Made by a program: the position numbers and the translations under genes
Source of the DNA: Wallemia ichthyophaga EXF-994
Taxonomy: Eukaryota > Fungi > Basidiomycota
Assembly: GCF_000400465.1 (NCBI RefSeq)
Contig: NW_008806277.1
Coordinates: forward strand, 330,001-362,000
Direction of reading: 5' to 3'
DNA: 32,000 bases
Notes under the pieces: generated by a model
Databases searched by the model: none
Told to the model about the DNA's origin: nothing
What the model saw: the letters and a program-made list of their open reading frames with translations, nothing else
Shown: positions 455 to 31,270 of the stretch, piece by piece
How the letters are laid out: each line of letters starts with the position of its first letter
Position numbering within the stretch: position 1 is the first letter of the stretch

Positions 455-3045
455 TCAAGCGACGTACCGGTAAATCATCCGATTTTCAGTACGTTCGAGG
501 TATTCTCGCTGTTTGTCCCGTTAAAATGTCCTCATTATCTACTCCACACTTACCTCTATCAACGCCTCTATCCGCTTCTTGATCGCTTGCGGCGTGGGGG
601 CGAACCGCGAGCCTAGCATCTTTGAAGCTTCAATTACTATCTCGTTATGAGATGCTTGTTTCCTTGACTTCATTATCCTCACAACACACGCCTGTTTTAT
701 TTTTGTCAAATTTTCACTTTCTCACTTTCCACTAATCACACTCACGTCAGTCTGGTGCTTGCGCTCCTCCTCAACCTTTTCATCTGTTTCTTTTCGCTCT
801 TCGCTCGTCTCTACGCGGTTTGCTATCGTCGCTATCTTGATCTTGGCCAGTGGGGAGCTGAAGTTAAGATTGACGCGGAAGCTATCTGACGCGCGTACCT
901 CCTTCCCTTTAGGATCCTTCTCTAGCAGTTTATACTTACCGCATGCCAGCGTCTGCAGATTCCGCTTTAGTTCATTCTCGGGTATGTTAGTCGTCGACAG
1001 TATGTCACTGTACTTCAGCCACTTTCCATCCTCGACATCATCAAACAGCAGCAAAACGATGGCGCCGAGAGTCGACACATTCACATCGTATTTCCTCTCT
1101 TGGTACTCCACCTTCATGTCCACGGTCCCCTGCGTCACTTGCCATAGCATCCGTCTACCGCTGTGGCGCTGGAGGTAGAAACGCTCGTACTGCTGCTGCA
1201 TCCTCGTCATTACATCAGGCAGAGTTGCTGTGTTTACCTGTGCCGGCATTGGCCAGTACGAAGCGGTGAGAACATTTACATTCAGTTCGGCCTTGTCGGA
1301 GGGCTGTGAGGTGTATGAGAAGCGTGAAGCACAAGACATAAAGTCATCCCACCTTTTCTTTAATACTCAAGTGATTTTTATACGCTCTCATATTGTCTGC
1401 AGATGTGCGCATGTCTGTGTACAGTCATAGTTAGCATGAGTATCTCGCAAAAACCTCCACCAACCATTGAACATTCCCTCCATCTTTTGCGTAAACTGAA
1501 CTCCACATTCCACTTTCAGCTTGGCCAGCATTCCACGCTCGGCATCGTCAGACACTGACCTGCCCTGAATCAATCTGCGTGCAAGATGTCTCTTATAAAA
1601 CACCTCAAAGACATCCTTGTCAACGAGGAATCTAAACAAAACTATTGTCTGATCGAGCACCTCGTCTGCCTCATCTTCACTCTTTCCCTTGAGACCTTTC
1701 TTGAGGTTATCGTCGATGAAAAGGGAGATGAATTCTGAAGCTTTGGTGTTCATGTTGACAAAGTTTTCAAATCCTTCATTTATATATGTTTGGACATCCT
1801 CGTCGTGTTTAAAAGCCTTCTGCCAGAGATTGTCAAACTTTAGCTTGAGTTGGAGTGTCTGTTTGACCCATTGGAGGGCGAGATTGAGGGTGGAAACGTC
1901 ACTGGATGGAGGCTTCTTCGAGTCGTTTTTGGGTTCGTGTATGAGCGAGAAGACATCCGAGTTGATCGCCTGGCCGCGTCTAATGACGTCTTCTTTGATT
2001 GCTTTCCGCAGAGCAGGTGGACCGTGAGTGGGTATGAGATGAAAAAGGTTGTGAAGTCTTGAGAGGTCTTGAATAGCATCATTTTCAATCAAATCAACCA
2101 ATTGAGAGAGTATGTCAGGTATTTTGTTAGTCAGGAGTTCATTTTCGAGGACGTGCTGGTAAATGGGAGCTGTGTGGAGACTCAAGTAGTGCGAACAGCG
2201 ATTACTCTCCTCAATCAGCCTATCCTCGACCCTCCTGAGATAAGAAGGGATGTCATTCGACGCGAGGAAGTTGGAGGCTTCTTGGTTGTAGTACTTGACA
2301 CACTCCAATTCAAGTTGTGGCTCTAGTGACAAATTGTAAAGTGAAGAAAGTGAGTCAGAAGGCGGAACATAGCTGGATGGAGTGTTTGGAGGAGTCAATG
2401 ACAAACCTAATAGGATATCACAGCAGGATTTCAATACTGATCTGTTTATAACACAACCATCCCTTTCGAGATGTATTTGAGAGTGGATCGCGTTGAAAAG
2501 GGATGGTTGTATATCAGGGCATGTCTCAGAGTTGAAAAGGACGTGATCTCTGAACAAATTGAGACCGAGCTCCCAAGTATTGGCGACGTTGTTAGATGGG
2601 GTGTAAACTTTATCCATATACTTAAGCACATCGCGTAGCTTGCTCAATGCAGCGATGTGATCGTTCCAAAGGAGAAGAAGGGACTTCAAGAAGGATTCGC
2701 CCGAGTGGAGAGTGTGAGAGAGGGTAATGTCATGTGCCATGTAGCGCCTAGTGAGAGACCTGAGGAAGGAGACAGTGAGCTTGGACAGACCATCGTAGAG
2801 CTTATCGCCGTTCTTGTGGAGTACAAGGGTGTAGGCACTGCGATAGGTCTCCTCAAAAGACAGATTGGAAGCATTGTGGTTTTGGATTTCCTTGATAGCC
2901 ACCGAAAGCCTCTGCCAGGAATCCTCGAAAGATCTCCCGGCGTCGATCTGAGTAATTACGAGATGAATAAAGAAATAATAAATCAAATGTAAAATACCTT
3001 CTTTGGTGGTTTTATCTTTGGTTTCACTGGTCTTCTCGTCGACAT
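455..3045 (-). CDS. CUL3: Cullin-3 (E3 ligase scaffold), 6 exons: 3045-2998, 2947-1465, 1414-1353, 1303-746, 691-554, 508-455
   Basis: Spliced start MSTRRPVKPKIKPPKK|IDAGRSFEDSWQRLSVAIKEIQNHNASNLSFEETYR. Also has FRFLVDKDVFEVFYKRHLARRLI, the neddylation motif VVRIMKSRK and the end REYLERTENRMIYRYVA*. All five introns are GT-AG, 45-54 nt, and preserve the frame. The ORF-track start at 3100 is a GTG. Confidence 0.95.
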
Positions 3046-3080
3046 GATGATGGCTGTTCTGTTGAAGACTTACTATCGTC

Positions 3081-3596
3081 ATGACTGTAGCACCAGGCAC
3101 TCAAATACCACCAGCTTCCTTCAATTACATCCCCCACTCCAAAGACTCGGAATCAATCCAAGCCTGTGGAATTCCAATATCCCTCAACGCCCATGAGGAG
3201 TGGAAGGGCAAGCGAGTCGTCGTCATCAGCGTACCGGGCGCATTCACTCCGACTTGCCACGCCAACCACCTCCCCCCATTCGTCGCCAAGGCCTCTGAGA
3301 TCCACGATAAGGGCGCAGACGTCATTGCGTTTCTCAGCTCAAACGACCCGTTCGTGTTAAGTGCCTGGGCCAAGTCCGCGGGCGTGAAAGACAACTCTAT
3401 CATCTTCATCAGCGACGGCAACGCGGAGTGGTCAAAGCAATTGGGCCTCGACGTCGACCTCACTAGCAAGGGCATGGGCATGAGGTCCTCCCGCTACGCA
3501 CTCATTATCGACGACCTTAAATTGAGCTACGTTGCACAGGAAGAGCCAGGCAAATTACAAGTGAGCTCTGCAGATGCTATCCTCGCTAACCTGTAA
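3081..3596 (+). CDS. AHP1: Peroxiredoxin, Prx5/Ahp1/Pmp20 (Asp f 3-like) type, intronless
   Basis: PGAFTPTCHANHLP peroxidatic Cys motif, N-terminal ACGIP Cys, NDPFVLSAW, and GMRSSRYALIIDD. Confidence 0.93.
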   Translation: MTVAPGTQIPPASFNYIPHSKDSESIQACGIPISLNAHEEWKGKRVVVISVPGAFTPTCHANHLPPFVAKASEIHDKGADVIAFLSSNDPFVLSAWAKSAGVKDNSIIFISDGNAEWSKQLGLDVDLTSKGMGMRSSRYALIIDDLKLSYVAQEEPGKLQVSSADAILANL

Positions 3597-3822
3597 AGTG
3601 ATATAGCTGTGTATATCCATGTGAAATTTTTCAAAAAGCAATGGTAAACAAAACGGATATGTGAGCGGGATTGCGGGAGATAGCGCCAAATTGATTGACT
3701 GAGAATTACTCATAATACCCGAATTATGATACAGTTTATGATATCATGTGACGCCATTAGGGCTAGATTTTGTTCGATGATCAAGTCCTATTTTTGCGCA
3801 TTCACTTGGAAATCACTTTGAA

Positions 3823-4363: not shown

Positions 4364-4380
4364 GTTTTTGTGTATCTGTA

Positions 4381-4431: not shown

Positions 4432-5398
4432 CTAACTGCTTTTCCTATTCCATTCCACTAGCTGATCGAACTTGACCTGAGTGCCGCCAAAGATATCAAG
4501 TGCGCTGTGGCTAGTGAGTTTACTTATATCGCAGTAAACATAGCCTACCTTCCATACGTAAGATCCACTTTGCCATGTGATAGGGTGTTCACTAGGTCCA
4601 AATCGTCAATGTCTGAGCAGTAAAAGTGAGAAACAAGACGAAAAGCACCATCAAAACCTACGCTTAGCACCGCCAGCGTATGTAGTTGGTATACTAACCC
4701 ACTCGCCGAGCTTCTGCACCAAATCCTCATCGATCCCATTACACAAACCCTCTACATCGGCAGCGTGGATGAGGAATTCTGAGCAAAACTGGCTAATCAA
4801 GCTGATAGAATCCTGTGTGACCTCCATATCGGTGAGGGTCTGCCATTTGTTCATGGCTACCACCCAGCGATTATCACGACGTCTGCAACTGAGATCCACG
4901 ACGAGTCTGTGCCTTCCAACAGACTGGGATACACTGCGCAGCCTCTCTAAGCTGAAAGAAGCGTCTGGGAAGAGGAAGCTAGTTACGATAACCTGAAATG
5001 GGTCTTGTGAGTTAAGCAAATGACGTGCAATCACGATAAGCCACCTTCTCTGCACCGGCCACAATCCACTGCTCTGCATTAGCGTCATTAATCCCACCGC
5101 CTACATGCATCGCGTCTGCATAAACAGCTTTAGTGCTTTGATAACGGCTATGTGGTGCAATCTACACACCGGGCCACGCTGCGACGGCGGAGAGGGCTGC
5201 ATCGTCATTTCCTGCGCCTAATTTTATTATGTGTCCGCCGATAAGCCCGTTATCGTGGTAAAGTCGCGCGTACTCTGCTGGAGCCATCTCTGCGACAAAG
5301 TTGGTGTGTAACGCCGCGGGATCGTTCGATAGAGTACCGCCAACGATCTGCTTGACGACGCCGCTGTGTAGATCGATGCACGGTCTGAATTTTGTCAT
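4432..5398 (-). CDS. HIS6: ProFAR isomerase (histidine biosynthesis), 5 exons
   Basis: [84 protein letters not shown]. Canonical introns; stop TAG at 4434-4432. The ORF-track start at 5401 is a TTG; the ATG is at 5398. Confidence 0.95.
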
Positions 5399-5454
5399 CA
5401 AAGGTTTTGCGTGTTGGGTGTTTTGAGCAAACCACCAACAGCAGCTATAGCACC

Positions 5455-7173
5455 ATGTTCAGGGCATTCCCCAATTCGGCAGTTAGAGTTGCCGGTGTTA
5501 GAGTTGCCGGCGTCTCGGCTCGGCGTATCAGTACACAGCCAGGCTCGGGCTCAGGCTTAGGCTCGCGCACACGCAACACACAACATCCCCACACTCACCA
5601 CTCACGCTCACACTCACACCCACGCCCACGCAAACCCACTTACGACGGCACTGGGAAGTTGCAGGCGAATGACTCGTACTTGCTCAGCCAGCGCGTCCGG
5701 GAGCTCAGCCAGCGTAGCAAATTCGACGAGGCACTTAAATTGGTCCTTAGTGAGAGCAGGGGCGAGGGGCTAGCGAATGTTGTTGTGTGGAACCAGCTTC
5801 TACAGGAATCCCGCGTGGCTCAAAACTCAAATCCCACAGAGACATACAAACTTTTTATGGACATGAAAAAAAGAGGTATCACCCCTAATTCCCGCAGCTA
5901 TACTATTCTTTTTAGAGCTTTTAGCGGCGGCGAGAAAGATCGTCCGTCAAAGAAGACTCTCGAGGCTGCATTGACCGTCTTCCGCCAGTTAGGCAGCTAC
6001 CACGCTTACCTGCGCGAGGAAATGGATGAAGAAATTATCCAAGAGGAAAGCAGTGTTCTTCCTATCAACGCTTACCTCGCTCTTCTCGCTAAAGTGGCCC
6101 ATTCTTACGAAATGATGAAAATTTTCGACGATATGGCTCAATCTGGCCCTAGCTCACCCGACCTGTACACCTACACCACCATCTTCCAGGGTCTACTACG
6201 CGCTGGCCAGGCAGAGGATGTGGAGCGTGGCCATGAGTTGTGGCGGGTGTATATCGCGCGTCTGAAACAGGCCAGTATTGATGCAGATAACGGCGCAGAT
6301 AATGCCACACAATCGCTCCAACGCCTCACCCCAGACACAGCACTCATCTCGAATGTCCTCCGTCTGTTCACAAAAGGCACGCCGAAAGACTGCAAAGCGG
6401 GTTTAATGATAGCCCACACCTTCCTCTCCGTCCCGGCCCCATCACCGTTTATAGAGAGACAAAAAGGGTATCTACCGCGAGTCGAACTGAACGACCGCGT
6501 CATAGATTCTCTATTCCACCTCGGTCTGGCTGCTGGGCGGCCGTCACTGGTGATACGTCATGCAGATCACCTCCTCAACCAGGAAAAGGTGCGCTCGTTT
6601 CTTCGCACGCGCAGCATGTTCTTCGCCCTCCTCGCCTGTGCGCGGGAAGGAGATGCGGGGAAGGCAATTGAGTATCTGCGGGTGATGCGTTCGCTCAAGC
6701 ATGGACAGCCAGATGCACAGTCATTCGAGCAGGCCATGGCTGCTGCTATGAGGGCGCAAAATGCGTCGTACAAGAAGGCCTGCGAGGTGTGGGAGATGGT
6801 GCAGGCTACCAAGACACCCGTAGACATACGCATTATGAGCTCACTCATGAAGGCGTCGCTTAATGAGAGGGATGTGGATGTGTGGGATGCGCTGGAGAAG
6901 CTGAGCGGATTCCCACTCTCAGCTTTCTTCAATGCGAAAACACATGCAGCACACCCCAATGACTCTCGCGGCCAGCTCAAACATCAGCAATTCTGGGAAC
7001 ATAGACTCGCTAAGAGCCTTTTGCAGGCTGTAGATAGAGTGGGGCGGGGTGAACACGTGAATATCCCTGGTAAAACGCGTAGACATGACGAGATGCTGGA
7101 TGAATACGCCGACATGGCGAGAACGGTGTTAGGAGTGGAGCAGAGAGCACCCCGCAAGCAACACAAGCAATAA
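5455..7173 (+). CDS. Pentatricopeptide-repeat (PPR) protein, probably mitochondrial
   Basis: Arg/Ser-rich acid-free N-terminus from the ATG at 5455 (MFRAFPNSAVRVAG...). PPR-like starts NVVVWNQLL, PNSRSYTILF, PDLYTYTTIFQGL, PDAQSFEQAM and DIRIMSSLMKA. Intronless. Confidence 0.8.
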   Translation: MFRAFPNSAVRVAGVRVAGVSARRISTQPGSGSGLGSRTRNTQHPHTHHSRSHSHPRPRKPTYDGTGKLQANDSYLLSQRVRELSQRSKFDEALKLVLSESRGEGLANVVVWNQLLQESRVAQNSNPTETYKLFMDMKKRGITPNSRSYTILFRAFSGGEKDRPSKKTLEAALTVFRQLGSYHAYLREEMDEEIIQEESSVLPINAYLALLAKVAHSYEMMKIFDDMAQSGPSSPDLYTYTTIFQGLLRAGQAEDVERGHELWRVYIARLKQASIDADNGADNATQSLQRLTPDTALISNVLRLFTKGTPKDCKAGLMIAHTFLSVPAPSPFIERQKGYLPRVELNDRVIDSLFHLGLAAGRPSLVIRHADHLLNQEKVRSFLRTRSMFFALLACAREGDAGKAIEYLRVMRSLKHGQPDAQSFEQAMAAAMRAQNASYKKACEVWEMVQATKTPVDIRIMSSLMKASLNERDVDVWDALEKLSGFPLSAFFNAKTHAAHPNDSRGQLKHQQFWEHRLAKSLLQAVDRVGRGEHVNIPGKTRRHDEMLDEYADMARTVLGVEQRAPRKQHKQ

Positions 7174-7180
7174 CATTTGA

Positions 7181-7220
7181 ATGTATTCATGTATTCATGT
7201 ATTCATATATTCATATATTC
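7181..7220. repeat. 8-nt tandem repeat (ATGTATTC)x3 (ATATATTC)x2 just after the PPR stop
   Basis: Read directly from the sequence. Confidence 0.85.
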
Positions 7221-7298
7221 ATTATTTATTTTCTCTACGGGAATTTCCGGTTCGACGCGGCATCTCTCCGGCTTACGGCTTAGATCAACACACTGAGG

Positions 7299-9143
7299 AT
7301 GAAAATAACAGGCGCAACAAATATCCACAAATTAGGAGGCACTCAGGGGACACATGCAGCGCGGAACCTGATGCAGCTGACGCACTCTCCGTCGTGTGGC
7401 TGCTCGGCGTGTGGCAGTGGCAGTCGCAGTCTCAATTCTCAGAATGGGCCCGTCGGCGACAATGCATTTGAGGTGGGAGGCTAATTCTGCAGCGTAGAGA
7501 ATCACCTCACACCGCACTCTACACTCTACTCCAGATGCAATCGGCGGCTATCCGATTCGGTCATAACGTCACGAGAGAAGTCGGCCAAGATCTCGCGTCG
7601 ATGCGGGCGCGGATGGTGGGCGTGTACACGGATCCCACAGTAGCGCGACTGAGGCCAGTTAGAGCGGTGGGTGTGTGTCAGGTAGGTGTGCACCGCTAAC
7701 GCGCGTGCGCGTGCGCGTTTAGGTACTCGAGAGCCTCGAAGAGAACATGGTCCCACACAAGTTGTTCGAGCAGGTCAAATGTGAACCCAACGAAGACAGT
7801 TTGCAGGCAGCTATCGACTTTGCACGCCTGCACAACTTTTCCCATTTCGTTGCGTGAGCTAGGCCTAACTACTATCCGGACCACAAGCACTGACTATGGA
7901 TTCACAGCGTCGGCGGCGGCTCTACAATAGACACTACCAAAGTAGCCAACCTCTTCAGCGTTTACAAGAACGATCCTCTGCTCACCTTTGTCAATGCGCC
8001 CGTTGGGAAGGGGCAATTAGTGACGCAGCCGCTCAACCCGCTCATAGCGATTCCTACGACGGCCGGTACGGGCTCGGAGACGACTGGGCAGGCCATTTAC
8101 GATCATCAGAGCTTAGGCGCCAAGACGGGGATAGCGTCGCGCATGCTTAGACCCACTATGGGCATAGTGGATGCTTGGAATATCGACACATGTCCTGTGG
8201 AAGTGCATATAAGCGCTGGATTAGATACGCTATTTCACGCTCTCGAATCATACACCGCTATACCCTACACACAACGCTCACCACGCCCCCAGCACCCGTC
8301 GGAAAGACCCGCTTATCAGGGCGCGAACCCCATGTCGGATGTGTTTTCCCTCTGGGCACTCAAAACGACGGTCAAGAATCTGCCCAAGGTCGCAGCGGAC
8401 CCAACGGACAAACGCGCTAAAGAACAGATGCTCCTCGCTTCCACTTTCGCCGGCTACGGGTTCGGTACGGCTGGAGTGCACTGTGAGTCTTGAGGTTGTA
8501 AAAGTATGTGTTCTAACTGTGTCTTAGTATGTCACGCTTCTTCATACCCTGTAAGAAGGATTTTGATCATTAGAAACGAGAGAAGTCCTGACACTTTCAC
8601 AGATATCCGGCCTCAATAAGAAAGGTCCTCAGTATTGTCATCCGGGATATGAGGATGTAGGAGAAGCAATAATTCCACATGGCATCAGCGTCGCGTTGAC
8701 GGGACCAGCTGTGTTCAAGTTCACCACACCATCTAACCCCGCACGGCACCGCGAGGCTGCGGCTATCTTCGCTGGAATGGATATGGAACCGGCTGAGTGG
8801 GCCAGGCTTCCCGACAGCGATATCGGCCAGCTGCTCTAGTGAGTTGTGTGATTTTGTGGGGTGTATTGCTGACGTGAACTTTTCAGCGACCAGATTGTTG
8901 CTTTCTTGGGTAAGCTCGGCGTGCCAATGGGATTGAGCCGTGTGGGGTACACGCATTCGCATATTCCAGCACTGTGAGTCGGGTATCGGAGCGGGTAGAT
9001 GACTTTCTAATACAAACACTCTCAGCGTCGATGGCACGCTCCCGCAGAGGAGAGTCCTCAGTCTGGCGCCTAACTTTGACCCAGGTGTGGATGTGGCTAG
9101 GGAACATCTCGCTGGGATTCTCGAGTCGTCAATGAGGTATTGA
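7299..9143 (+). CDS. Hydroxyacid-oxoacid transhydrogenase (ADHFE1/HOT, iron-containing ADH family), 8 exons including a 23-nt microexon at 8528-8550
   Basis: DNAFE|[84 protein letters not shown] and [12 protein letters not shown]. All introns are GT-AG and frame-preserving. Confidence 0.92.
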
Positions 9144-10233: not shown

Positions 10234-10659
10234 TTAATTTGATTTCTTAGTGTTGCCGTTATCATTCCACTTGACGGGATTCTTATTGTAACATGGCCAA
10301 GCTGGACCAACCACCTATCAAGAGTTAATTAGAGTGATATTATACTTGAAATTCACCCACAATCGCCGCAATTACGCATCCAGCCACGAAGATTATTCCC
10401 GTCACTTCAATTCTCTGCATAGCCCATCCAATGACGAATGCTATAATCTACATAACAAATAAGCACGCCTCTCACACTCCACATATACTCACCGTCGTTG
10501 TGGATATAATGTACTTCTGCAGACGCTCTGCTTTCAGTTGACCGATGTAGTCCTGGGGAGTTGGTGTAAGCGTGTTTACTGCAGCGTGCACTAAACAGCA
10601 ACATGAAACCCCAATCAACGTACAATTTCACCCGCCAAAAACCTCTGAATACGCTCCAT
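10234..10659 (-). CDS. SPC1: Signal peptidase complex subunit SPC1/SPC12, 87 aa, 4 exons (10659-10624, 10552-10493, 10447-10361, 10314-10234); absent from the ORF track
   Basis: Three phase-0 GT-AG introns (71, 45 and 46 nt) give MERIQRFLAGEI|DYIGQLKAERLQKYIISTTT|IIAFVIGWAMQRIEVTGIIFVAGCVIAAI|VVGPAWPCYNKNPVKWNDNGNTKKSN*. This has the SPC12 D.xGQ..AE start, two TM helices and the P.WP.Y...P..W motif. Confidence 0.92.
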
Positions 10660-10677
10660 CGATGTTAGAACTCAACG

Positions 10678-11359
10678 ATGAAATTGGGATATTTGGGACC
10701 AGTTGGGAGTTATTCGAATATATTAACAGAGAAATACTTTGCTCACTCCACATACACTCTCCACCCGCACTCGCAGATACAGCAGCTCTTTGAAAATCTC
10801 GACAGCGACGCAATTGAGTTGGCGATTGTACCGATCAGGAATTCAACGTTTGGGGAGGTACGCGAGAGTGCTGAGGAGAGAGCAATACGGCCGAAGCTGC
10901 GAAAGCTAAGAGAATATTCACTCAAAGTGGAGCATTGTCTTGTGGGAAGGCAGGGAAGTAAGGTGGAAGACGTACAATTGGTCAGCTCACACGAGCAAGC
11001 GCTGGGACAGTGTAGGGAGTATTTAGCAGGCAGAGGCATAGCCAAACACCTCAAAGCATCTTCTACCGCTAACGCTACGCATTCTTTGTCAACACAAAAC
11101 TCAATTGAAGGCGTGGATGTGGGGAAATGTGCGAGTATCTGCTCAGAGAGTTGCGCAGGTTTGTTCGATAATCTTGCTATACTGGATAAAGGTATACAAG
11201 ATAACAAAGGTGGGCTAGATTAGCGGGGCTTTGATGGCTTTGAGTTGACTCGAATTTGCAGACAACACTACAACATTCTATCTCATGTCTTATAGAGATA
11301 TTGATGGGCATTCACAGTCACCAATCACCACTCAACAGAATAACCTTTTTGGTCTGTAG
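10678..11359 (+). CDS. PHA2: Prephenate dehydratase catalytic domain, short, with no ACT domain detected; exons 10678-11209 and 11262-11359
   Basis: YLGPVGSYS, AIVPIRNSTFGEV, VEHCLVG, SSHEQALGQC, SSTANA and GIQDNK|DNTTTF, with a 52-nt GTGGGC..TTGCAG intron. The conserved ENS and TRF motifs are altered. Confidence 0.78.
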
Positions 11360-12896: not shown

Positions 12897-12909
12897 GTGT
12901 ATATATAAA

Positions 12910-13514: not shown

Positions 13515-13541
13515 GGATGTAACCTCTTCAAACGCGTCATC

Positions 13542-19765: not shown

Positions 19766-22356
19766 ATGCCGATTCTCTATCCGGCACTTTTAGACAGCAT
19801 ACAGCTCACAAGGAGAGCAGGCGTTTTCCAAGGCGGGAAGCCTAACGAGGTCAGCTCATCCGATCCACTATCCTTATTCGTTATTCAAGCATCTTTCATT
19901 ATCATTTTCACAAGGGCTATCGGTTACCTACTGGCCAAAATGAGACAGCCGAGAGTTATCGCTGAACTCATCGGCGGTATCATTCTCGGACCCAGTATAT
20001 TCGGCCAGATACCCAACTACATGGATGATATCTTTCCAGAAGACTCCTTACCTTATCTGAATCTCATTGGTACACTCGGCATTATTCTCTTCTTATTTAT
20101 TATTGGCATGGAGATTGATTTCACTGTTTTGAGAAAACGCGTCAAATCTGGCTTGGCTGTAGCTTCAACTACCCTTGCAATCCCGTTAGGCGCTGGTATA
20201 GCTTTGGGCGTTGGTTTATGGAAGCAATTTAGCCACAATCAAGACGTTTACTTTTCTCATTACATTCTTTTCATCGGTATAGCTATTTCTGTCAGTGTCT
20301 CATTTCCTATCCACCCTTACATCTAACTTCTACACAGATTACAGCTTTCCCCGTTCTTTGTCGTATACAGGTGGAGCACAAGCTCACACACACACCTGTA
20401 GGTGCTGTCACCATGTCAGCCGGTGTCATCAACGACGTCGTAGGATGGATCCTACTCTCCATCATTGTCGCACTAATTAACGCAGATGGTAGCATCATCA
20501 CTTTGTGGATTCTATTAGTAATCCTCGGTTGGACACTACTCATGGTTTTCGCAATCAGACCTCTTTTCTACGCCTTTGCAAGACGTAATGGCAGTTTAGA
20601 CGGTAGTGGTCCAAGTGAATTTGTTATCATGTTGTCGCTCTTACTCGTCTTCATATCTTCATTCCTCACTGACATTGTCGGTGTGCATCCAATCTTTGGT
20701 GCTTTCTTAGTCGGTTTGATTATGCCCAAAGAAGGTAGATTCAATGTTATCATTACTGAGAAGATTGAAGATGTCGTTATGATCATTTTCGTACCAATAT
20801 TCTTCGGTTTGGTCGGTATACAAACTGATCTCTCTTTACTCAACTCTGGAACTATCTGGGGATATACAATATTGGTTATAGCTGTAGCCTTCTTCTCAAA
20901 GTTCCTCTCTGGCGCTGTCACAGCTAAGCTCTGTAGATTTAATGTCAGAGAAAGCGGTGCGATTGGTACACTCATGTCTTGCAAGGGACTGGTAGAGATC
21001 ATCGTCCTGAATGTTGGACTTCAAACTTCGATCTTAGATAGGAGAGTGTTTTCAATGATGATTTTTATGGCAGTTATCACAACGTTCATCACAACCCCAA
21101 TGGCACGCATCATGTACCCATCTAAACACCGTCCAATGAAGATGGATGAAGATGGCGAAGAGGATGAAAAACCGAGGCCATCGACAGAAAAAGGTCAATT
21201 GGATAGATACCTAATGGTAATGCAAAAAATGGAACATGTATCGACTCTACTCCACTTCACCAAACTCCTCGAATCGGATAAACAGCAGCATCATATAGAT
21301 GCACTGAGATTAGTTGAACTCACAGAGAGAACTTCTGATGCACTTCGATCTGAAACTCAAGAGATGAAATCAGATCCATTGTTGGGAATATTTACGACGT
21401 TCGCACATCTGCGCAATATGATCTGCCACCCACTGTTGAGTCTGACGCTGCAGGATAACTTTGCAGAAACTGTAGCTGAACAGGCAAATGAGAGTGATCT
21501 CGTCGTTTTGCCATGGAAGAGTCACAGAGAGGCTATTGAGAAGGAGCAGCAAGCAGGACATCAGAATCCATTCGACACGTTATTCAACCTTCAAAGTGCT
21601 TCACAAAGATATATACAATTCGTAAGGAAAGTACAGTCGCAATCGATGGCATCTACAGCGATTTACCTCGATCAAGGTAGTGTGGATGACGGGGACAGTT
21701 GGAATGGAATGACGATATTCATGCCATTTTTCGGTGGATCAGATGATAGAACGGCATTAAAATTGGTCCAGCAACTGTGTAATAGACAGGATGTTAATGC
21801 AATAGTTGTTCGGATCAAGAAGGAGTTGGAAACCAAGGCATCTAATGATACGACGACGGGACAATTAACCGAGTATTCACCACACGCTCTCCCAGATACA
21901 ATTTATGCGGCACAGAATACGCAGCAAATGTTAGAATCTGAAACAGCTGATGATCTTTGTTGGATGGAGTGTATTAGAGTAGCTGGTGGACTTGGAATGG
22001 AAATGAGGGAGAGTATGTCTTCTAAGCCACTCTATGAGGCTACAGGAGTAGCAAAGCAAGTTAAGGAAGGGTGTAGTGGACAAATGTTAGTAGTTTGCGG
22101 AAGAAGTCGGAATAAAGAGAACCATAGGCAGGAATTGGCAACGATATTGGAATCTGAAGGGATACAGAATCAGCCATCAGCACTCGCGGCTAACAGGTTT
22201 AATCATTTATTCCAAGTTAGTGCACCGCCCTCACCATCGACGCATCAGCAAATTGGACAAGAGGAACGCAAGACGCTAGGGGAACTGGCGACAGCATTGA
22301 TAATAAAGTTAGTAGACGTTTCAGCAATAATTGTACAATCATCTAAATCTGTTTAA
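19766..22356 (+). CDS. KHA1: Cation/H+ antiporter, CPA2 family (Kha1-like), 2 exons (intron 20291-20337)
   Basis: DPLSLFVIQ, RQPRVIAELIGGIILGPS, AIS|ITAFPVLCRI, AGVINDVVGWILL, GVHPIFGAFLVG, PIFFGLVG and LMSCKGLVEIIVLNVG. The cytosolic tail contains PFFGGSDDRTAL. Confidence 0.92.
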
Positions 22357-22411
22357 ATCTGTTTGAATAAATTTTCCTTCTTCTTAGACAGTCAACAAGC
22401 GTACTTGGAGA

Positions 22412-24348
22412 ATGCCAAAAATAAGGAAGAGTGAGAATACATTTAGTGATAAAGAGTAAAGGCTAAGATGTACACCCCCAGAAACATCAAAGAGAACGGG
22501 ATTGTTCGAGCGTGCAAAGATAAAGCAGAAAGCTAAAGAGACACGGAGGAAAAGGTCTAGGGATGAAAGGAGGGATCCGACATGGAGAAATAACAAGAAG
22601 AAGAAGGCTGATCCAGGTATACCGAACAGTTTACCCTTCAAGGAAGAAGTTTTGGCGGAAATTGAAGAGAAACGTACAAATGCTCTTGAAGCAAGAGAAG
22701 CTGCAAAGGCCGCTAAAGCTGCTGGTGAAGACGTAGAATTGAGCGAGAGCGATGAGGAAGATGAAGTGGGCGACGATGTGGACGATGACCACCCAGACTC
22801 AATCCCTCAACTCATCGACTCATCAATCACCACAGAAGCACCAAGCAACTTTGGTGAAAGCGTTGATGCAGCGGATGTCATTCTTCAAGTACTCGACGCT
22901 AGAGACCCACAAGGATTCAGAGTTGAAGCGTTGGAGAAGCTTTCAAAGCAGAAGAAAGTAGTCGTTATTCTCAATAAAGTTGATTTGGTTCCGAAAGAGA
23001 CTGTTAGAAGTTGGTTCAACACTCTCAACAGCCTCCTTCCTACCATTGTTTTCGCTTCTTCTGCTCATATTAATCCAATTGAAGGCTTAGAAGGGTGTCT
23101 TACAGCAGATACTGGCGTTGATGCACTCAAAAACCTACTTAGCTCATACTCAAAGGATAAGAAGGGCAAAAACCCTCTCAAAGTTCTCGTCGCTGGATTG
23201 CCAAACGTTGGAAAATCTGCACTCTTAAACACTCTGATTAAGCAACCATACTTTAAGACAGCTTCAGTTTCAACAAACTCCTTAATCGGCGCTAAGAACC
23301 CAACGACGACAACGACATCCATCTCTGCTGTCAATGTCGATGGCATTGTCTACATTGATTCACCTGGTTTATACTTTATTGGTCAATCTGGGCATTACGC
23401 TGCAGATATCCTCAGAAGGAACCTCGGCAGACCTGATAAAGTTAGAGAACCTCAACTTTTAGCAGACTGGATATTAAACAGATCAAATGAGGAAGATTTG
23501 ATGATGTTCTTCAAATTGCCTGCATTTGCTTCAGGCGATTATGAAGCTTTCTTTAAATCATTCGCCAATGTCGTAGGTCGTGTGAAGAAGAGGGGTGTTT
23601 TGGATGTTAATGGTGCTATGAGGGACTTTATTCTCAAGTACGTCAAGTATGATATGCCTTACTACACTGTTGCACCTGCAAATGACAAGCAGGAGAAGCA
23701 GAAGAAGGTGAAACAGATCAAAGGTGTCACTGATGTCGTTGCTCGGGATATCGATCGACTGCCTTCGAGAAAGCCAATGAGGAAGGCCAGAGGAGAGGTC
23801 AGACTCGTGGCTGCTCCTTCCGATGCTACAATCGAGAGCCGCGAATATGTCCCTACTGTTGGTGGTCCCGTCGAAGAAGAGAGTGAAGAAGAGCAAGCCG
23901 AAGACGATGAGGATGATGAAGAGGAGGACGACGACGAAGATGAGGATAATCAGGATATCGATGTACTTGGCGCTGTTGAGGATATGGAAGAACATGACAT
24001 GACTGTGGGTGACATGTTAGACCTTAACCCCCAACTACTAACCTTTTTGAATAGCCCGACGCCAACATTGAACCAGAAGCTCCATCTTCACCTCCACCGA
24101 AACACTCTAAGAAGAGGAAGGAGAGAGCACCCAAGGTGAAGTTTGCCAAGGAAGTGGAGACTTCGGATGCACCAAAGTCTAACAACAAGGCCACTGTCAG
24201 CAAAATTAAGACGAACAAGGAAATTGAGAAGCCAAAGCCAGCCAAGAAGGCAAAGGTTGAAGAAGGTGTATCAGCCAAGCAAGGACTCAAAGGGAAGAAG
24301 TCGGACAAGGTGGAAGGAGAAGCATTCGACTTTAACGAGTTCTTCTGA
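22412..24348 (+). CDS. NUG1: Nucleolar circularly permuted GTPase Nug1/GNL3 (Grn1)-like, 3 exons (introns 22431-22481 and 24005-24054)
   Basis: MPKIRK|KTSKR, KKADPGIPNSLPFKE, VLDARDP, G4 NKVD, G1 GLPNVGKS and G3 DSPG. Acidic tract, ending EAFDFNEFF*. Confidence 0.9.
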
Positions 24349-24458: not shown

Positions 24459-27400
24459 CTACCAACTGAAGCTCTCCTCGAATGCCACAGTCTTGGTTTT
24501 TGATTTGGAAACCAAGTTTTTCATCGTAAGGTTTAGCGCATCAGGGCCGCAGGTAGCAACGAGCAGAGCGTTATCATCGACCAGCTCCGACTCCTGACTG
24601 AATATAGTGTCCAATTTAGGTCTACCGCTTCGAGCAAACTCTGCAATGGAGAAGAGGTCACCTTCCTCAATAGCGTCGAGGACGATGTTATCAGGATCAG
24701 GCATTTTCAATTGAGATGTGTGTGATGTGTGTGGTGTATGTGAAGCTTGAGGGTCTGAATTAGATTGATCGATGGTGTGAACCTTGGGTGTCTCAGCGAA
24801 TGTTATATTAGGTGCATGTGTTGGTTTGTCAGGATGCGTGAGGGTTGTTTGAGTTGGATGCATATGAACGCTATGACCCATATTTGACCTCGCTCTAGCT
24901 ATATCACCCTCTGCACTGATCAGTATGCTCAACTCTCTCTCGACGGCCGGAGCAGGCTCGTTATCTTCACCGTCGAAGTCGACGAAATCGTTAATACTCG
25001 ACCGTTTGTTAATATCGTCTATGTCTTCTTCTGCGAACTGGTTGGACGCTGCAGTGGTGAAATCTGATTCTGCCACGTGATCCTGGTACTGCTGCTGCTG
25101 TTGCTGTTGCTTTTGCTTTTGCTCTCGCTCTCGCACTGGAGGCAAGTTCTTGTCGATTTGCGGCGAGCTCCGCGCTGACCGGAACGAGGGCTGTATACGA
25201 CTAGCAGAGTGCGTCGCATTGACAGCAACTGGAGGTACTTGTAGAGTTGGAGTGATGGAAGCTGCCGCTGTCTGCATGCTGAGGTCACTATGAGAGCGAC
25301 CCAAGTCACCCGCATCGCCCGAATCCTCACCCAGATTGGTTGCAGGTGTGTAGAAGCGCTGCACAGGCGAGCGTGGCGGCGAGTACGGCGATCCACCCGC
25401 GTCTCCTGCGTAAGGAGCTGCTGGCGTCGGCGGGAAAGGCGAATCAGGTGATGGGAAAAAGGAGCTTATAGTATTAGGTGCGTCGATTGTGGGCTGCGAT
25501 GTGACGAATATCTCGAGCTGGAATGCGTCTTGCGGGAGAAGTGTGGCACATCTGCGCAACGCACTGGCAACCCATTGTACATGCGCAAACTCCTTGACGA
25601 GCCACACGAGCCTCACGCGTCGCAGTGGTCCCGCGCCGAGGCTGATAACGTTAGTGACATGCTGCAAGATCGACACGCCGAACTGTGAACGTTGTCAGGA
25701 TGGCTGTAATAAAAGATAACCGTCCACACTCACACTTATTCCGCTCCCACCACAGACGAGTAGAATGGAGGAGTAGTTGGACCATCGCACCCGCCCCGCA
25801 CTGCCGAAGGGGCCGTCGATAAGAGCACGGATGTACACAGGCGGTGCTGCGCAGGGGAGGTAGCTGTGCGCATCGTTCCTATGCTCAGTGCCATTCCCAT
25901 TCCCGTTCCCGTCGCTCCGCTGCTGCTGCTCGCTCGTAATGAACTTGGGCTGGCGCATCAATCTCACCTTCTCCCACAGCTTGCGCGTCCAGCCGCTCTT
26001 GGCACGCACAATTACCACCACTTTATAAGGATCGTCTTCTGAGACATTTGCAATAGTGAATGGATGCGCACCGAAGCGGGAAATCTCCGGGATGATGATA
26101 GATGCGTGCTGGCCAGGCTGCCAGTGGAGTGGCGACGACAGACACAGCGTCAGCCGTACGCTCTTGCCAGGCAACAGCTGTGCATGTGTGAACCCAGTCG
26201 GATGCGAACGTCTAATCGGGAAAGACAGGCTGCTGGGTGGGGGAACGAGAGATGGTGTGGAGGTATCCTTCTTCGCACCATCCTTTTCCTTGTTCACTAC
26301 TGCTGTAGGTGAGAGATACTTCTCGACGCTGTCGTTGGATTTGTTTACTGTTGTCTTGCTTTGGCTTTGGCTGTTGGTGTTGCTCCGGGTGCTACTCTCG
26401 TCAGCCACCGCTTCCCGGCTCTTTTCGAGCTCCTCCCAGCCGAGCAGCGTGAGGTTTGCGGGCTTGTCCATCTGCGGAGAGACAAGAGACCTGATCGTTT
26501 GGGCGGGGCGCATGACCGTCGACCAGTGCACACCAGCGCCTGTACCTGATCCTGGTCCTGCATTCCCCTTGCCCTTCTTCATTTCACCCGCAAATCGTCC
26601 AGCGCCGGCATTGAGCCAGAGCACACGGAGACCGCGCCAGACGCGCTCAGCGAGCCAGAACGCCAGCGGGGTCCAAATAAACGGTGCAAGTGGCTTGTAG
26701 TGTATCCCTGCTGCGACGAGAAAAGCGAAGACAAGAACTATGTGCACAATGTGAAACAGTGCGTAGAATTTGTTACGGATGGGTGGGATAGAGAGGACAA
26801 GGATGAATGATAGAAAAAGGAGAGCCTGTAAAGAGTGTAAGAGCGTATCTCATAATCCGCAAACACACAACCACCCACCATAAACCCAGAAGAGTTAGTG
26901 CGCGATGACCATATCTCATTCCAAACACCTGTCTCATCCCTCTCTGGCCATGTGTGCTTAATCCAGAGAACCGTATGAGCGAAACTAAACGCCCACACCC
27001 CGACTCCACTCACGAAATGGAACAGAACGGCCTTGTCGAAATGGAGATTGGTGAAAAACTTCCAAGCGAATATAGCAAATGGTGGCATCTTTAGTCCGAG
27101 TATTACGACGAGCGGTGTGAGTATAAATGCCATCACACCTGTCCTATCAAAGGCATTCCTCTCCATTGAGTCGTGTATGTCGGAGCTAGTTCTCGAGAGT
27201 ACCATTGAAGGTGACTCAGGGCCAGTCAAGACGAGCATCGTGGGGAATGCACACAACGCCAGTATTCCAATCATGTGCGCTGTTGATGGGAGTGTGATGT
27301 ATGACCGGTGATTGGCTGTGTAGCGCAGCGTTGGAGTGTAGAGCGACCAACGCGTAAATTTGTTGTAGATGCCATTCTTATGCGTTAGGCCAGTTTGCGT

Positions 27401-27857: not shown

Positions 27858-28955
27858 TTAAACTGGAGGTTGTGGTACAGATTGCATAGCGGCGTTCATT
27901 TCTTCAGGAGTCATTGTGGTTGATTCTAACATGATACCGACACCAAATTTGGAAGCATTCTTGAGATGATCAATTTCGCCTGCGACCAAGAAAGCGAATG
28001 CAGGAGTGAATCTTTGCTCGAGCAAGGCTGAAACTTTTCCGGTTGAATCAAGTTGACCTCTGAAAGAAGCCATTCTGAAGTCATACTTTGCACCTAAGCT
28101 AGCATTTGCTTCCTTGCCTTGAGGTCTGTTGATAACTTGTAAAGTGGCAGCAGCGTCAACTTTATCGGACAATTTGTGGTGGTAAGTAGCTTCGAGCATT
28201 CCAGAGGGGTTAATTTGAGCGGTAGCCAACCAGTCCCTGTTTGAGCCATTCAATCTAACCAAATAAGAAGTCAAGGATTCAGAGACGCCCGGTTGAGGTC
28301 TTTGGAGGAGGGTTTCGAGGCCGAGGGCGATGTTTGGAGTGAGAGATTGGAGGTAGCTACCAATGTAAATACCAGTACCATCAATCATGGAAGGATTCAT
28401 AGCTTTACCGTTGAGGGAATAGTCTAAACCTTGATAGTCATGCTCTAATTGGATCATGGATTGACCAGGAACTTCAGAAAGCTGAGCTTGAACCTTTCCA
28501 GTACCGAGGTTAGCGAAGGATTGATTGGCGCGTCCAGTGAGGGTACCTGTGTGATCAACAGCACCTTGTAAGAAAGACTTTGCGTCTGCGTAGACTGCGC
28601 CGAAAGAGTAGTTTGGAGGGGATTGTTGAGAGCCCAGAGCGAAAGAGTGGGTGACTTGGAAAGCGGGGTTTAAGGAAATACCCTTTGTAAGATCAGCTCT
28701 AGCGCCGTCAAAGATGAAATTAGAGAGGAGCGTAGTTTTGGCTTCTCTGCCCATAGCTTCAGCGGTACCAGGGTTACCTAAGCTAAGGGATTTCCTCCAA
28801 TTCATGAATCTATTGTAGGTGGATGAGATAGGGCTGAGTGCGGCGGCAGCAGCAGATTTCTGTGGCTGCTGTTGCTGTGTATCGTGGTGGACCTCTGACT
28901 GGGTAAGAACCGGGGCTGCTTCACCTGGAGCGACTTGTTGGACTGGCGTGGTCAT
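27858..28955 (-). CDS. TOM40: Mitochondrial outer-membrane translocase Tom40, intronless
   Basis: SLSLGNPGTAEAMGREAK, FDGARADLTKGISLNPAFQVTHSF, YLQSLTPNIALGLE and FRGQLDSTGKVSALLEQR. First ATG is at 28955; the ORF-track start at 29054 is a TTG. Confidence 0.95.
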   Translation of the reverse strand: MTTPVQQVAPGEAAPVLTQSEVHHDTQQQQPQKSAAAAALSPISSTYNRFMNWRKSLSLGNPGTAEAMGREAKTTLLSNFIFDGARADLTKGISLNPAFQVTHSFALGSQQSPPNYSFGAVYADAKSFLQGAVDHTGTLTGRANQSFANLGTGKVQAQLSEVPGQSMIQLEHDYQGLDYSLNGKAMNPSMIDGTGIYIGSYLQSLTPNIALGLETLLQRPQPGVSESLTSYLVRLNGSNRDWLATAQINPSGMLEATYHHKLSDKVDAAATLQVINRPQGKEANASLGAKYDFRMASFRGQLDSTGKVSALLEQRFTPAFAFLVAGEIDHLKNASKFGVGIMLESTTMTPEEMNAAMQSVPQPPV

Positions 28956-29095
28956 ATTCGTAATAAAATCTAAATTTTTATATTCCTCGTCGCCGTTTAT
29001 TGTGAAGGCGATTAAGCTGTGGTGGTTTTCTGCAATTTTTAAAATATCAGACAAGGCTATTAAATTACTAGTGTAAGCTGCAAATTACTAGGAAT

Positions 29096-29683
29096 ATGTC
29101 TGCGTGTCTATCTTTCGTTAGAAATGTACTTGAATCGAGTTTGAAAAATATGGGACATGATTGGAGTGTGTTTGGTACACGCAATGGCACACACTCTGTA
29201 ATCTCTGCAAAGCCTGGATTCGTGCACCTGCGATTTATCGTCGATAAGCATAACTTGAATAGGCAGGGCTCTCTAAACGGCGGCTGTATTGCTTCTTTGA
29301 TCGACAGCGCTGGCTCGTTGGCTGTGTCCTCTCATGGTCTCTACTTCACCGGTGTATCCACTGACATGAGCCAAACATTCGTCAAGCCAATCCCATATGA
29401 TCAACCCGTTGAGATATACGCAACTGCTGCTAGCCTCGGTAGGACAATGGCCTTTACTAGAGTTGAGTTTTGCGATTCAAGTGATTCGCGTCGAGTTATG
29501 GCTTTTGGAGGGAAGTAATTAGTATACTAGTACAAACGCCTAACACTCACCACAGGCCACACAAAATACATTGCAAACAGTCAAGGCCAAGAGGTATGCA
29601 AATTTTCATCATTACAAATGTCTGCTCACATGACACGACAGGGTAACGTAAAGTTTAGTGAGGATGGTGAGAGTACTTTGTAA
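29096..29683 (+). CDS. HotDog-fold acyl-CoA thioesterase (ACOT13/PaaI-like); the 3-exon model needs a non-canonical donor at 29511
   Basis: NLNRQGSLNGGCIASLIDSAGSLAV, GVSTDMSQTFVKP and LGRTMAFTRVEF. Downstream exons HTKYIANSQGQE|GNVKFSEDGESTL* are linked by a canonical 48-nt intron (29594-29641). Confidence 0.85.
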
Positions 29684-29707
29684 GAGTTTATAATCAAGAA
29701 ATAATCA

Positions 29708-30607
29708 TCAGTCCTTTCGAAGCCTATCTAATCTGGCTTGTAAGCTGTCTTCGTCGGTTTTAGTTTGAGTTGAAGTGGTGGCTTGGGTGGTTGTAGTGGG
29801 GTTAGCAGCGCCAGCACCAGCACCAGCACCAGCACTGCCGCTCAATCCCTCAGCCATCGGCGTCTTTTTGTTTTTATCTGCGCCAGTATCGACGTCCAAA
29901 GTATCAGGCGTATTTGCGAGTTGTTGATTGAGAGTAACGCCAATGTCATCGAGTACCTGGCCAACGATCTTCTCCTCCTCCTCTTCACCTTGATCATCCT
30001 CCATAACGTCGTCAACAGCGTCAGACATAATTTCCTCTTTCATGTCCATTGAGGATGATTCACGTTCGAAATCGTTCATGATACGGGTAATTTGAGGGAG
30101 GTTGAGACTTCTATTCATCATAGCCATGCTCTGGTGGTGTGATAAGAAAGATGACGACATGAAAGCTATCAACACACCTTTGTTGCACCTTTCATAGCCT
30201 CAGACATTTGCTGATTCGATCTGAGTGTTTGGATACGCAGACTAACAGCTTGTAACTGAGTGCGCATCTGATAAAACTTCTGGATGTATTTCCTAGTCCG
30301 AACGAGATCCTTGGCCATGAGTTTGGTTGGTGCCTGGAGGATGTGTTGAGTGAGTGTCTACAGGGGATAAACAAGTACCTACCATTTGACCATTCTTGGC
30401 GCTCTTCTTAATATCGCTGATCAATTTGCTCTCCTGTCCCTCCAGCTTGCCACGCTCTCTGTCCAACTCGCGCTGAGCTTTCTCCAGTGCACGCTGATGC
30501 CGTCTCAGCCGTTCTTGGGGAGTGAGTGATTTACCAAATAAACTTTCCTATAGGTTTTATGAGTTTTTCCATTTTTACTTTTTATTTCAACCTACGATTA
30601 TATTCAT
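29708..30607 (-). CDS. DID4: ESCRT-III subunit Vps2/Did4 (CHMP2A), 4 exons
   Basis: MNII|ESLFGKSLTPQERLRRHQRALEKAQRELDRER...KNGQM|APTKLMAKDLVRTRKYIQKFYQMRTQLQAVSLRIQTL...|SMAMMNRSLNLPQI..., with the MIM1 tail DSLQARLDRLRKD*. Confidence 0.95.
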
Positions 30608-30634
30608 TGTGGTTGTTGATTGATAACGAGTGTC

Positions 30635-31270
30635 ATGACTGCTATTTGCATTTATTCCGGCAGCTCAGACGGTTCTACTCCGATATACAAAGACGTTGCC
30701 CGGCAAATTGGTTCTACGCTTGCCGCACACAACATTCCACTCGTTTACGGCGGCGGTGACGGTGGTCTGATGGGTCAAGTAGCCCGTAGTGCGCTGAGCA
30801 GCGGTGGACACGTCACGGGCATCATACCGCGCGCGATGGTGGCTGTGGGCGAGAAGGGTGAGCGCGGCAGCACCAGCCATACCACTCTCCCCTCCCACCC
30901 AAACCTCGACTCTATCGTCGTCGATAGCATGCACGAGCGCAAACTGGCCATGGCTCACCGTTCCTCCTCTTTCATCGCCCTTCCTGGTGGTTTCGGCACT
31001 TTCGAAGAACTCCTCGAGGTGACCACGTGGTCTCAATTGAATATCCACGCCAAGGCGGTCATCGCCGTCAATGTAGATGGCTTCTTCAACCCCCTCAAGC
31101 ACCTCATCGCTTCCGCTGTTGACGCCGGTTTCATAAGCAGCAAGAACGCTCATCTCATCCACTTTCTGGATCATCCCCTCGATGGTGACTGGGGCTTGGC
31201 TGCTATAGACGCTTGCAAAAACTACTCACCCACTGGCGAAGAGTATGCCTTTGATTGGTCGCGGGTGTGA
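30635..31270 (+). CDS. LOG1: LOG (Lonely Guy) family phosphoribohydrolase, intronless
   Basis: ICIYSGSS, LVYGGGDGGLMG, VTGIIP, MHERKLAM and the signature ALPGGFGTFEELLEVTTWSQL. The ATG is at 30635; the track start at 30620 is a TTG. Confidence 0.93.
   Translation: MTAICIYSGSSDGSTPIYKDVARQIGSTLAAHNIPLVYGGGDGGLMGQVARSALSSGGHVTGIIPRAMVAVGEKGERGSTSHTTLPSHPNLDSIVVDSMHERKLAMAHRSSSFIALPGGFGTFEELLEVTTWSQLNIHAKAVIAVNVDGFFNPLKHLIASAVDAGFISSKNAHLIHFLDHPLDGDWGLAAIDACKNYSPTGEEYAFDWSRV

Follow-up and report, generated by a model that had tools for sequence, protein, structure and literature searches.

The closest described system to the arrangement reported here is that of the microsporidia Encephalitozoon cuniculi and Antonospora locustae, in which transcripts overlap with the genes next to them, initiation within upstream genes being common, and in which the 5' untranslated regions (5'UTRs) of the intracellular stages rank with the shortest known (PMC3629993). 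A compact genome has likewise already been published for Wallemia: that of the halophilic basidiomycete Wallemia ichthyophaga comprises 9.6 Mb, about three quarters of it coding, at a density of 514 genes per Mb, and has 2.41 introns per gene with a length of about 61 nt (PMC3849046). The present work concerns five head-to-head gene pairs of W. ichthyophaga EXF-994, the start codons of which lie only 18-56 nt apart, in a window of 32,000 nt (GenBank scaffold KE007227.1, positions 330001-362000). Nothing on promoter, untranslated region or transcription start site (TSS) architecture of Wallemia was found in the searchable literature.

Classical bidirectional pairs have a nucleosome-depleted region of at least about 100-200 bp with one TSS on either side of it, and hundreds of nucleotides separate their start codons. 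A polymerase II preinitiation complex spans roughly -45 to +20 around the TSS, that is about 60-80 bp. As 18-56 nt between two start codons is less than this, promoter DNA must lie over the transcribed 5' end of the partner gene. The original prediction had offered two alternatives, namely overlapping 5'UTRs with each core promoter inside the partner's coding region, or nearly leaderless mRNAs. Promoter DNA overlies the partner under both, and the two differ only in where the TSS is located.

The head-to-head pairs and their start codons

All five divergent pairs listed in the original prediction are present at exactly the positions given there, with spacers of 35, 56, 18, 27 and 27 nt. In every case the members are neighbouring protein-coding genes on opposite strands with their 5' ends facing each other, as expected of a bidirectional pair. 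The genes and spacers are:

455-3045, minus strand: CUL3 (cullin), ATG at 3045, stop codon 455-457, exon 1 2998-3045 (16 codons), Cullin domain from residue 27
2948-2997, minus strand: CUL3 intron 1 (50 nt, 78% AT)
3046-3080: CUL3/PRX spacer (35 nt)
3081-3596, plus strand: PRX (Ahp1/Prx5-type peroxiredoxin), ATG at 3081, 171 aa, single exon, Redoxin domain from residue 17
4432-5398, minus strand: HIS6 (ProFAR isomerase), ATG at 5398, His_biosynth domain from residue 6
5399-5454: HIS6/PPR spacer (56 nt)
5455-7173, plus strand: PPR-repeat protein, ATG at 5455, 572 aa, presequence-like N-terminus
10234-10659, minus strand: SPC1 (signal peptidase 12-kDa subunit), ATG at 10659, four exons, exon 1 10624-10659 (12 codons), intron 1 10553-10623, SPC12 domain residues 12-80 (E=7.5e-27)
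10660-10677: SPC1/PHA2 spacer (18 nt), with an out-of-frame upstream ATG at -16 from PHA2
10678-11223, plus strand: PHA2 (prephenate dehydratase), first exon, ATG at 10678, PDT domain from residue 4
12910-13514, minus strand: FAP7 (adenylate kinase 6 homologue), ATG at 13514, 181 aa, one intron, AAA_18 domain from residue 9
13515-13541: FAP7/RPN6 spacer (27 nt), with ACGCGTCATC adjoining the RPN6 ATG
13542-14856, plus strand: RPN6 (proteasome lid subunit), ATG at 13542, exon 1 13542-13587, intron 1 13588-13634, RPN6_N domain from residue 6
29708-30607, minus strand: DID4/VPS2 (ESCRT-III), ATG at 30607, exon 1 30596-30607 (4 codons, MNII), intron 1 30548-30595 (48 nt, 75% AT), Snf7 domain from residue 21, 3' end inferred from the open reading frame (ORF) 29708-30175
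30608-30634: DID4/LOG spacer (27 nt)
30635-31270, plus strand: LOG-family cytokinin riboside 5'-monophosphate phosphoribohydrolase, ATG at 30635, 211 aa, single exon, LDcluster4 domain from residue 9

The short first exons of CUL3, SPC1, RPN6 and DID4 (4-16 codons) require GT..AG introns of 47-71 nt; for CUL3 the splicing of exons 1, 2 and 3 is confirmed in a spliced RNA contig from a Wallemia relative that is described below. ORF 722-1339 is an internal cullin exon of CUL3 and not part of the downstream kinase. The fungal homologues of PRX have 168-173 aa at 97-100% coverage, and the FAP7 product exactly matches EOR02865.1.

The GenBank coding sequences of EXF-994 share the start codons of CUL3, PRX, HIS6, PPR, PHA2, FAP7 and RPN6. 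SPC1 lacks a GenBank annotation in this strain but is annotated at the same position in W. mellicola. The fetched EXF-994 GenBank loci end before DID4 and LOG, the starts of which are supported by the equivalent annotated starts of their orthologues in W. mellicola and W. hederae. Each of the ten ATGs is the first in-frame ATG after an in-frame stop codon located 12-114 nt upstream. In nine genes the Pfam domain begins 4-27 residues after the start, and the next in-frame methionine is either absent or lies within the conserved domain. In the PPR gene the first repeat begins at residue 108 and the next methionine follows only at residue 135, so that a single in-frame ATG is available between the upstream stop codon and the repeats.

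The original prediction had named true starts further downstream as the outcome that would overturn it; the tiny gaps would then be artefacts of annotation and the real ones ordinary. GenBank models in the genus are in fact error-prone, with fused genes, a missing SPC1 and alternative PRX starts. Against this stand the upstream stops, the domain onsets and the positions of the next methionines, in PPR as well as in the other nine genes. Furthermore, conservation in W. mellicola and W. hederae extends to the N-terminal peptides, and the RNA-derived reading frames of the relative begin at the orthologous ATGs of CUL3, PRX and LOG. An annotation artefact is thus highly improbable and can be regarded as essentially excluded.

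Divergent gaps in the genus Wallemia

Gaps were measured in the window plus 7 kb upstream, about 39 kb in total, from ATG to ATG for divergent, from stop codon to ATG for tandem and from stop codon to stop codon for convergent neighbours. The seven divergent gaps amount to 66, 35, 56, 18, 27, 140/194 and 27 nt (median 35 nt); all seven are at most 194 nt and six are at most 66 nt long. The largest belongs to a looser pair at 27858-29518 that consists of TOM40 (27858-28955, minus strand) and a 4HBT thioesterase (29150 or 29096 to 29518, plus strand). The 140 nt originally given for it hold with the ATG at 29096 and become 194 nt with the GenBank ATG at 29150; in W. mellicola this spacer has 204 nt. 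Tandem gaps have a median of 268 nt (range 21-640) and convergent gaps measure about 100 nt (range 26-189). Divergent gaps are shorter than tandem ones (median 35 versus 268 nt, one-sided Mann-Whitney p=0.013). In Saccharomyces cerevisiae divergent gaps are the longest and convergent gaps the shortest, so that the order of the gap classes in W. ichthyophaga is the reverse.

In W. mellicola the medians are 38 nt for divergent (n=11), 167 nt for tandem and 56 nt for convergent gaps, and divergent distances as small as 11 nt (SPC1/PHA2), 15 nt (SRP72/TPK) and 28 nt (HIS6/PPR) occur. Tiny divergent gaps (11-47 nt) are found in W. mellicola and W. hederae alike. A comparison with other compact fungi had been proposed, and was carried out on one 20-kb sample of Malassezia cuniculi: its four divergent gaps (244-313 nt) are longer than those of W. 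ichthyophaga, without overlap between the two sets (p=0.005), samples being small throughout. The tiny divergent spacing is real and genus-wide, and it is neither a matter of chance nor of generic compaction.

The individual spacers differ between species. SPC1/PHA2 has 18 nt in W. ichthyophaga, 11 nt in W. mellicola and 40 nt in W. hederae, and the corresponding values for FAP7/RPN6 are 27, 47 and 40 nt. HIS6/PPR has 56 nt in W. ichthyophaga and 28 nt in W. mellicola; for CUL3/PRX the figures are 35 and 38 nt. The DID4/LOG spacer measures 27 nt in W. ichthyophaga; W. mellicola has 122 nt, W. hederae 117 nt and a Wallemia contig from the Logan collection (L013) about 131 nt, so that its shortness in W. 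ichthyophaga is a specific and recent loss of about 90-100 nt. Spacer lengths that drift so freely suggest that deletion is ongoing and tolerated, and not that a design is conserved. The genome-wide promoter logic that five cases in 32 kb had suggested is therefore borne out in so far as it extends to all divergent pairs in the 39 kb and to W. mellicola and W. hederae, while the lengths of the spacers are not conserved.

Transcript overlap in a relative and the probable position of the promoters

RNA evidence is available from two contigs of sequencing run SRR23314750, which stem from a Wallemia relative with aligned bases about 91-96% identical to W. mellicola. They were assembled by Logan, which works at k=31 and retains 31-mers seen at least twice (PMC12424806). 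The first contig (L011; 8,912 nt) merges five genes from both strands. Relative to genomic W. mellicola sequence, about 20 GT..AG introns of 42-53 nt have been removed from it, each on the strand of its own gene. The contig runs continuously from the spliced CUL3 exons 3, 2 and 1 (minus strand) across a 38-nt spacer into spliced and polyadenylated PRX (plus strand), the poly(A) end of which lies about 55 nt past the PRX stop codon. Since the path is unbroken at k=31, minus- and plus-strand RNAs must share at least 30 nt, and an overlap of this size over a 38-nt spacer means a combined length of at least 68 nt for the leaders of CUL3 and PRX. L011 also spans the 132-nt spacer between ERCC4 and a gene for a 247-aa protein, the leaders of which sum to at least 162 nt. 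Antisense overlap of RNA 5' ends is thereby seen for one of the five pairs, CUL3/PRX, in a close relative. A distance of less than 1 kb between the TSSs, as in bidirectional promoters, follows trivially at such spacing; non-overlap of the TSSs is contradicted by L011 for CUL3/PRX of the relative.

The second contig (L012; 3,658 nt) comprises two convergent genes, LOG and one for a phosphodiesterase. On the left it ends 20 nt upstream of the LOG ATG, within the stretch that forms the 122-nt DID4/LOG spacer in W. mellicola; the TATAAATA of that spacer lies 33-40 nt further upstream. The right end carries 19 nt of spliced phosphodiesterase 5'UTR. The intron in this 5'UTR has 49 nt (GTCAGT..ACAG) and ends 6 nt before the ATG, as seen by comparison of L012 3637-3658 with L014 13709-13775. 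L012 points to a short leader where space allows and to ordinary spacing between TATA element and TSS, and the DID4/LOG pair of the relative, with its 122-nt spacer, is consistent with non-overlapping TSSs. Furthermore, L012 stops inside a spacer, which shows that genomic DNA contamination does not bridge spacers in this library.

These contigs bear on the possibility that the mRNAs are nearly leaderless and stand back to back, with both TSSs in the spacer, no overlap and leaders of no more than about half the spacer (5-25 nt), a situation that would resemble Giardia or the intracellular stages of microsporidia. Leader length is indeed limited by upstream ATGs at -16 (PHA2), -25 and -26 (RPN6 and FAP7), -29 (DID4) and -31 (PRX); in view of the one at -16, PHA2 may have a leader of few nucleotides, and just 20 nt of leader are present in the LOG contig. 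On the other hand, the leaders of CUL3 and PRX in L011 need at least 68 nt across 38 nt of spacer. In spacers of 11-18 nt there would be room for leaders of 5-9 nt only, and leaders that short cause leaky scanning in yeast and mammals. Where space allows, the relative has leaders of at least 20 nt (LOG) and at least 19 nt (phosphodiesterase) and not of a few nucleotides, so that this part of the original prediction found no support there. We regard the nearly leaderless arrangement as unlikely.

The positions of upstream ATGs speak on the opposite extreme as well. Six of the ten W. ichthyophaga genes have out-of-frame upstream ATGs 16-37 nt before the start; to those just named CUL3 is added at -37, and in front of PRX there are three on the plus strand (3044, 3047 and 3050). 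The reading frames of most of them overlap the main ATG. Efficient translation in the presence of such close upstream ATGs would limit leaders to about 15-36 nt and, at spacers of 18-35 nt, would place the TSSs in the spacer or at its edge, beside the partner's start codon. As far as can be judged from the sequence, it is therefore unlikely that leaders extend far into the coding region of the partner.

Deep reach is what would be expected if the genes were truly interleaved, with the main TSS and the core promoter situated at a depth of more than 100 nt within the partner and with long, antisense-overlapping and possibly spliced 5'UTRs. This would accord with the phosphodiesterase 5'UTR intron of the relative and with the sum of at least 162 nt for the leaders flanking the ERCC4 spacer. 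It would also accord with a depletion of sense-strand ATGs over the 100 nt that lie just past the partner's ATG (1.0 versus 1.66 per 100 nt, ratio 0.62, nominal p=0.004, orthologues not being independent) and with the absence of any upstream ATG for 104-179 nt in SPC1 and PHA2 of W. mellicola and W. hederae. Depletion and upstream ATG positions point in different directions on the question whether the dominant TSS lies inside the partner. Against interleaving stand the out-of-frame ATGs within 37 nt in six of ten genes and the LOG transcript of the relative, which starts 20 nt from its ATG behind a canonical TATA element. Moreover, a plus-strand RNA that started inside the partner would retain the partner's intron, and it is the spliced form that L011 shows. 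Interleaving thus appears rather improbable as the general arrangement, slightly more so than near absence of leaders, and either arrangement may apply to individual pairs.

AT content reaches 56-61% from -90 to +60 around the spacer centres, versus 39-50% further out, and this rise would fit a nucleosome-poor zone of about 150 nt over both start codons. Together with the depletion of ATGs it is compatible with some transcripts reaching further. As for conserved elements, the original prediction had seen no motif shared by the spacers beyond C/A-rich runs just before the ATGs; inspection by eye revealed only a CAACG/ATC-type context before the ATGs and one block, ACGCGTCATC, that is specific to a single pair. 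It is located directly 5' of the RPN6 start (13532-13541 in the window; L009 20146-20155 and L010 about 6398-6407 in the relatives) and has been conserved across W. ichthyophaga, W. mellicola and W. hederae in a spacer that otherwise varies in length and sequence. The block includes an MluI-box-like ACGCGT and could be a transcription factor site or part of the leader. A resemblance between two spacers (GCTGYTCT..TTGAAGA) is possible and is not claimed. TATA-like elements in partner introns were noticed for the RPN6 intron in two species and are absent in W. hederae; such introns are AT-rich anyway and these elements prove nothing. No structured RNAs or tRNAs that would explain the larger gaps were found.

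Judging from the tandem gaps and from the PRX 3'UTR (about 55 nt), a promoter that stands free would take up, together with its leader, about 100-200 nt, and two of these cannot fit into 35 nt. We cautiously favour leaders that are short and overlap, the promoter DNA of each gene being embedded in the first exon or intron of its partner. In the genus Wallemia, compaction by deletion would have shrunk most head-to-head intergenic regions to 11-66 nt, with both members of a pair still being transcribed independently. The TSS of each gene would lie in the spacer or at its edge, near the partner's start codon, and leaders would be short (about 15-45 nt), so that the leaders of a pair would overlap, each crossing the common spacer in its own direction. 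Upstream of each TSS, the DNA needed by a preinitiation complex would extend over the partner's start codon and first exon and over the AT-rich first intron of those partners that have one. The promoters of a pair would thus be superimposed and not placed side by side, and probably only one preinitiation complex could be accommodated at a time. The spacing, the start codons, the pattern across the genus and the continuous RNA over one orthologous spacer of the relative were observed; for W. ichthyophaga itself we infer the TSS positions, the location of promoter elements and the mutual exclusion of complexes. Of the two original alternatives, overlap of the 5'UTRs is supported for one pair, the CUL3/PRX orthologues of the relative in L011; core promoters deep inside the partner's coding region are improbable in view of the upstream ATGs.

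Several observations weigh against superimposed promoters with short, overlapping leaders. Two reads per 31-mer suffice for assembly, and rare read-through or antisense RNA could have formed the bridge in L011, the more so as PRX is probably abundant and a rare bridging RNA correspondingly likelier. Contig ends are only approximate TSSs, and the RNA evidence covers one pair of five and stems from a relative, not from W. ichthyophaga. In the latter, an exact look-up of PRX matched the GenBank scaffold only, without a transcript-sized contig. The upstream ATG and AT signals derive from small samples with non-independent orthologues and are confounded by coding composition, and no conserved core promoter motif was found in partner exons or introns. 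Among the other pairs, cluster listings for W. mellicola FAP7, PDT, SPC12 and PPR contained only genomic-type fragments ending at exon ends, and a homologue search with the PDT exon returned no RNA-derived representative. FAP7 and PDT scans of JGI/ENA metagenome contigs yielded no Wallemia, with matches at most 40% identical.

A more speculative extension concerns introns close to the start codon. In four of the five pairs the first intron of one partner begins 12-48 nt past its ATG. The DID4/LOG spacer, shortened by about 90-100 nt from its ancestral state in W. ichthyophaga, carries a TATAAATA in W. mellicola. Intron 1 of DID4 has 75% AT with T-tracts in W. ichthyophaga, versus about 40-56% in three relatives with long spacers, and intron 1 of CUL3, which lies upstream of PRX, has 78% AT. 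These two introns suggest that, after deletion of the spacer, the promoter of one gene may move into the first intron of its divergent partner. Start-proximal introns might then be kept and shaped as the nucleosome-free, TATA-like core promoter of the opposite gene. We consider this doubtful at present.

Neighbouring genes and comparison with known systems

Compact arrangements are not confined to the five pairs. The CUL3 stop codon (455-457) is followed on the same strand, 21 nt on, by the ATG of a protein kinase gene (433). In the relative (L011 5837-5855) this gap has 15 nt, and a cullin of 811 aa and a kinase of 656 aa are encoded in separate frames on one continuous contig; GenBank gives the two as a single fused protein of 1,439 aa. 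Unless the message is bicistronic, the kinase gene must have its TSS within the coding sequence of CUL3. A tandem gap of 55 nt (22357-22411) separates the stop codon of a Na/H exchanger from the ATG of a GN3L/nucleostemin-like GTPase. Between the convergent stop codons of the NIF phosphatase gene and FAP7 only 26 nt remain (12884-12909), so that their 3'UTRs must overlap. Convergent gaps of 5 and 17 nt occur in W. mellicola.

Gaps of this size entail frequent annotation errors in the genus, both fused models and missed small genes. In EXF-994, GenBank fuses PHA2 with the downstream NIF phosphatase gene (10678-12883; PDT+NIF, 560 aa). The Na/H exchanger and the GN3L GTPase are fused in models of W. 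hederae and W. mellicola (19766-24348 in relatives), and RPN6 is fused with a downstream gene for a 500-aa protein (868 aa; 13542-16747) in other W. ichthyophaga strains. The corresponding ORF (15245-16747) has no Pfam match and lies in a stretch with a strong A skew (AT skew 0.18-0.24); W. mellicola and W. hederae have conserved it as a gene for 445-455 aa. For PRX, an in-frame ATG 45 nt upstream of the start is present in W. mellicola (L009 10001-10007) and in L011 (8282-8288), where it overlaps the CUL3 start codon on the opposite strand (ATGACAT / ATGTCAT). Several GenBank models use it (183 aa); the ATG further downstream is favoured by the JGI model (168 aa) and by homologues from fungi, and the corresponding upstream ATGs of W. 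ichthyophaga are out of frame.

The N-terminal region of the PPR protein (5470-5640) contains a direct 15-nt duplication, GTTAGAGTTGCCGG[T/C], read as VRVAG VRVAG, and an insert rich in His, Ser and Pro, HPHTHHSRSHSHPRPR, which the W. mellicola orthologue lacks. G+C content is 52-57% at 5000-9000 (PPR and Fe-ADH) and at 25000-27000 (ferric reductase), versus 42-48% in most of the window.

If the proposed superposition is true, most divergent promoters of Wallemia, a free-living, culturable and intron-rich fungus, would overlie coding sequence. The fungus would then offer a convenient system for asking how little dedicated promoter DNA a eukaryote needs, whether two opposed preinitiation complexes compete for the same 60-80 bp, and how coding sequence and introns absorb promoter function after deletion.

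Like the microsporidia, Wallemia has a compacted genome of the fungal lineage. Unlike them, it is free-living and keeps an ordinary intron density (2.41 introns per gene, PMC3849046). Furthermore, it is mainly the divergent and less so the convergent gaps that have collapsed in Wallemia, tandem gaps still measuring a few hundred nucleotides, and the descriptions of overlap in microsporidia concern mainly the transcripts of the spore stage. In yeast, plants and mammals, classical bidirectional promoters likewise involve head-to-head genes that share one short regulatory region; they differ from the Wallemia pairs, in which the ATGs are 18-56 nt apart and the RNAs overlap in the one orthologous pair for which this was tested. 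Species of Malassezia have genomes of similar size, about 9 Mb (9.0 Mb in M. globosa, PMC3849046), and also show short convergent gaps (1-305 nt). Their divergent gaps, in the M. cuniculi sample, are nevertheless far longer than those of Wallemia, which argues that compaction alone does not yield the Wallemia pattern.

Very short intergenic regions and leaders are likewise found in Giardia, Entamoeba and other compact protists. Such protists possess unusual, initiator-driven promoters, whereas in the Wallemia relative the canonical TATAAATA is located about 35 nt upstream of the RNA 5' end. For Entamoeba, reports include antisense overlap (PMC7677554). The spacing in Wallemia is an extreme case of a known kind of compaction, that of overlapping promoters in compact genomes, and not a new mechanism.

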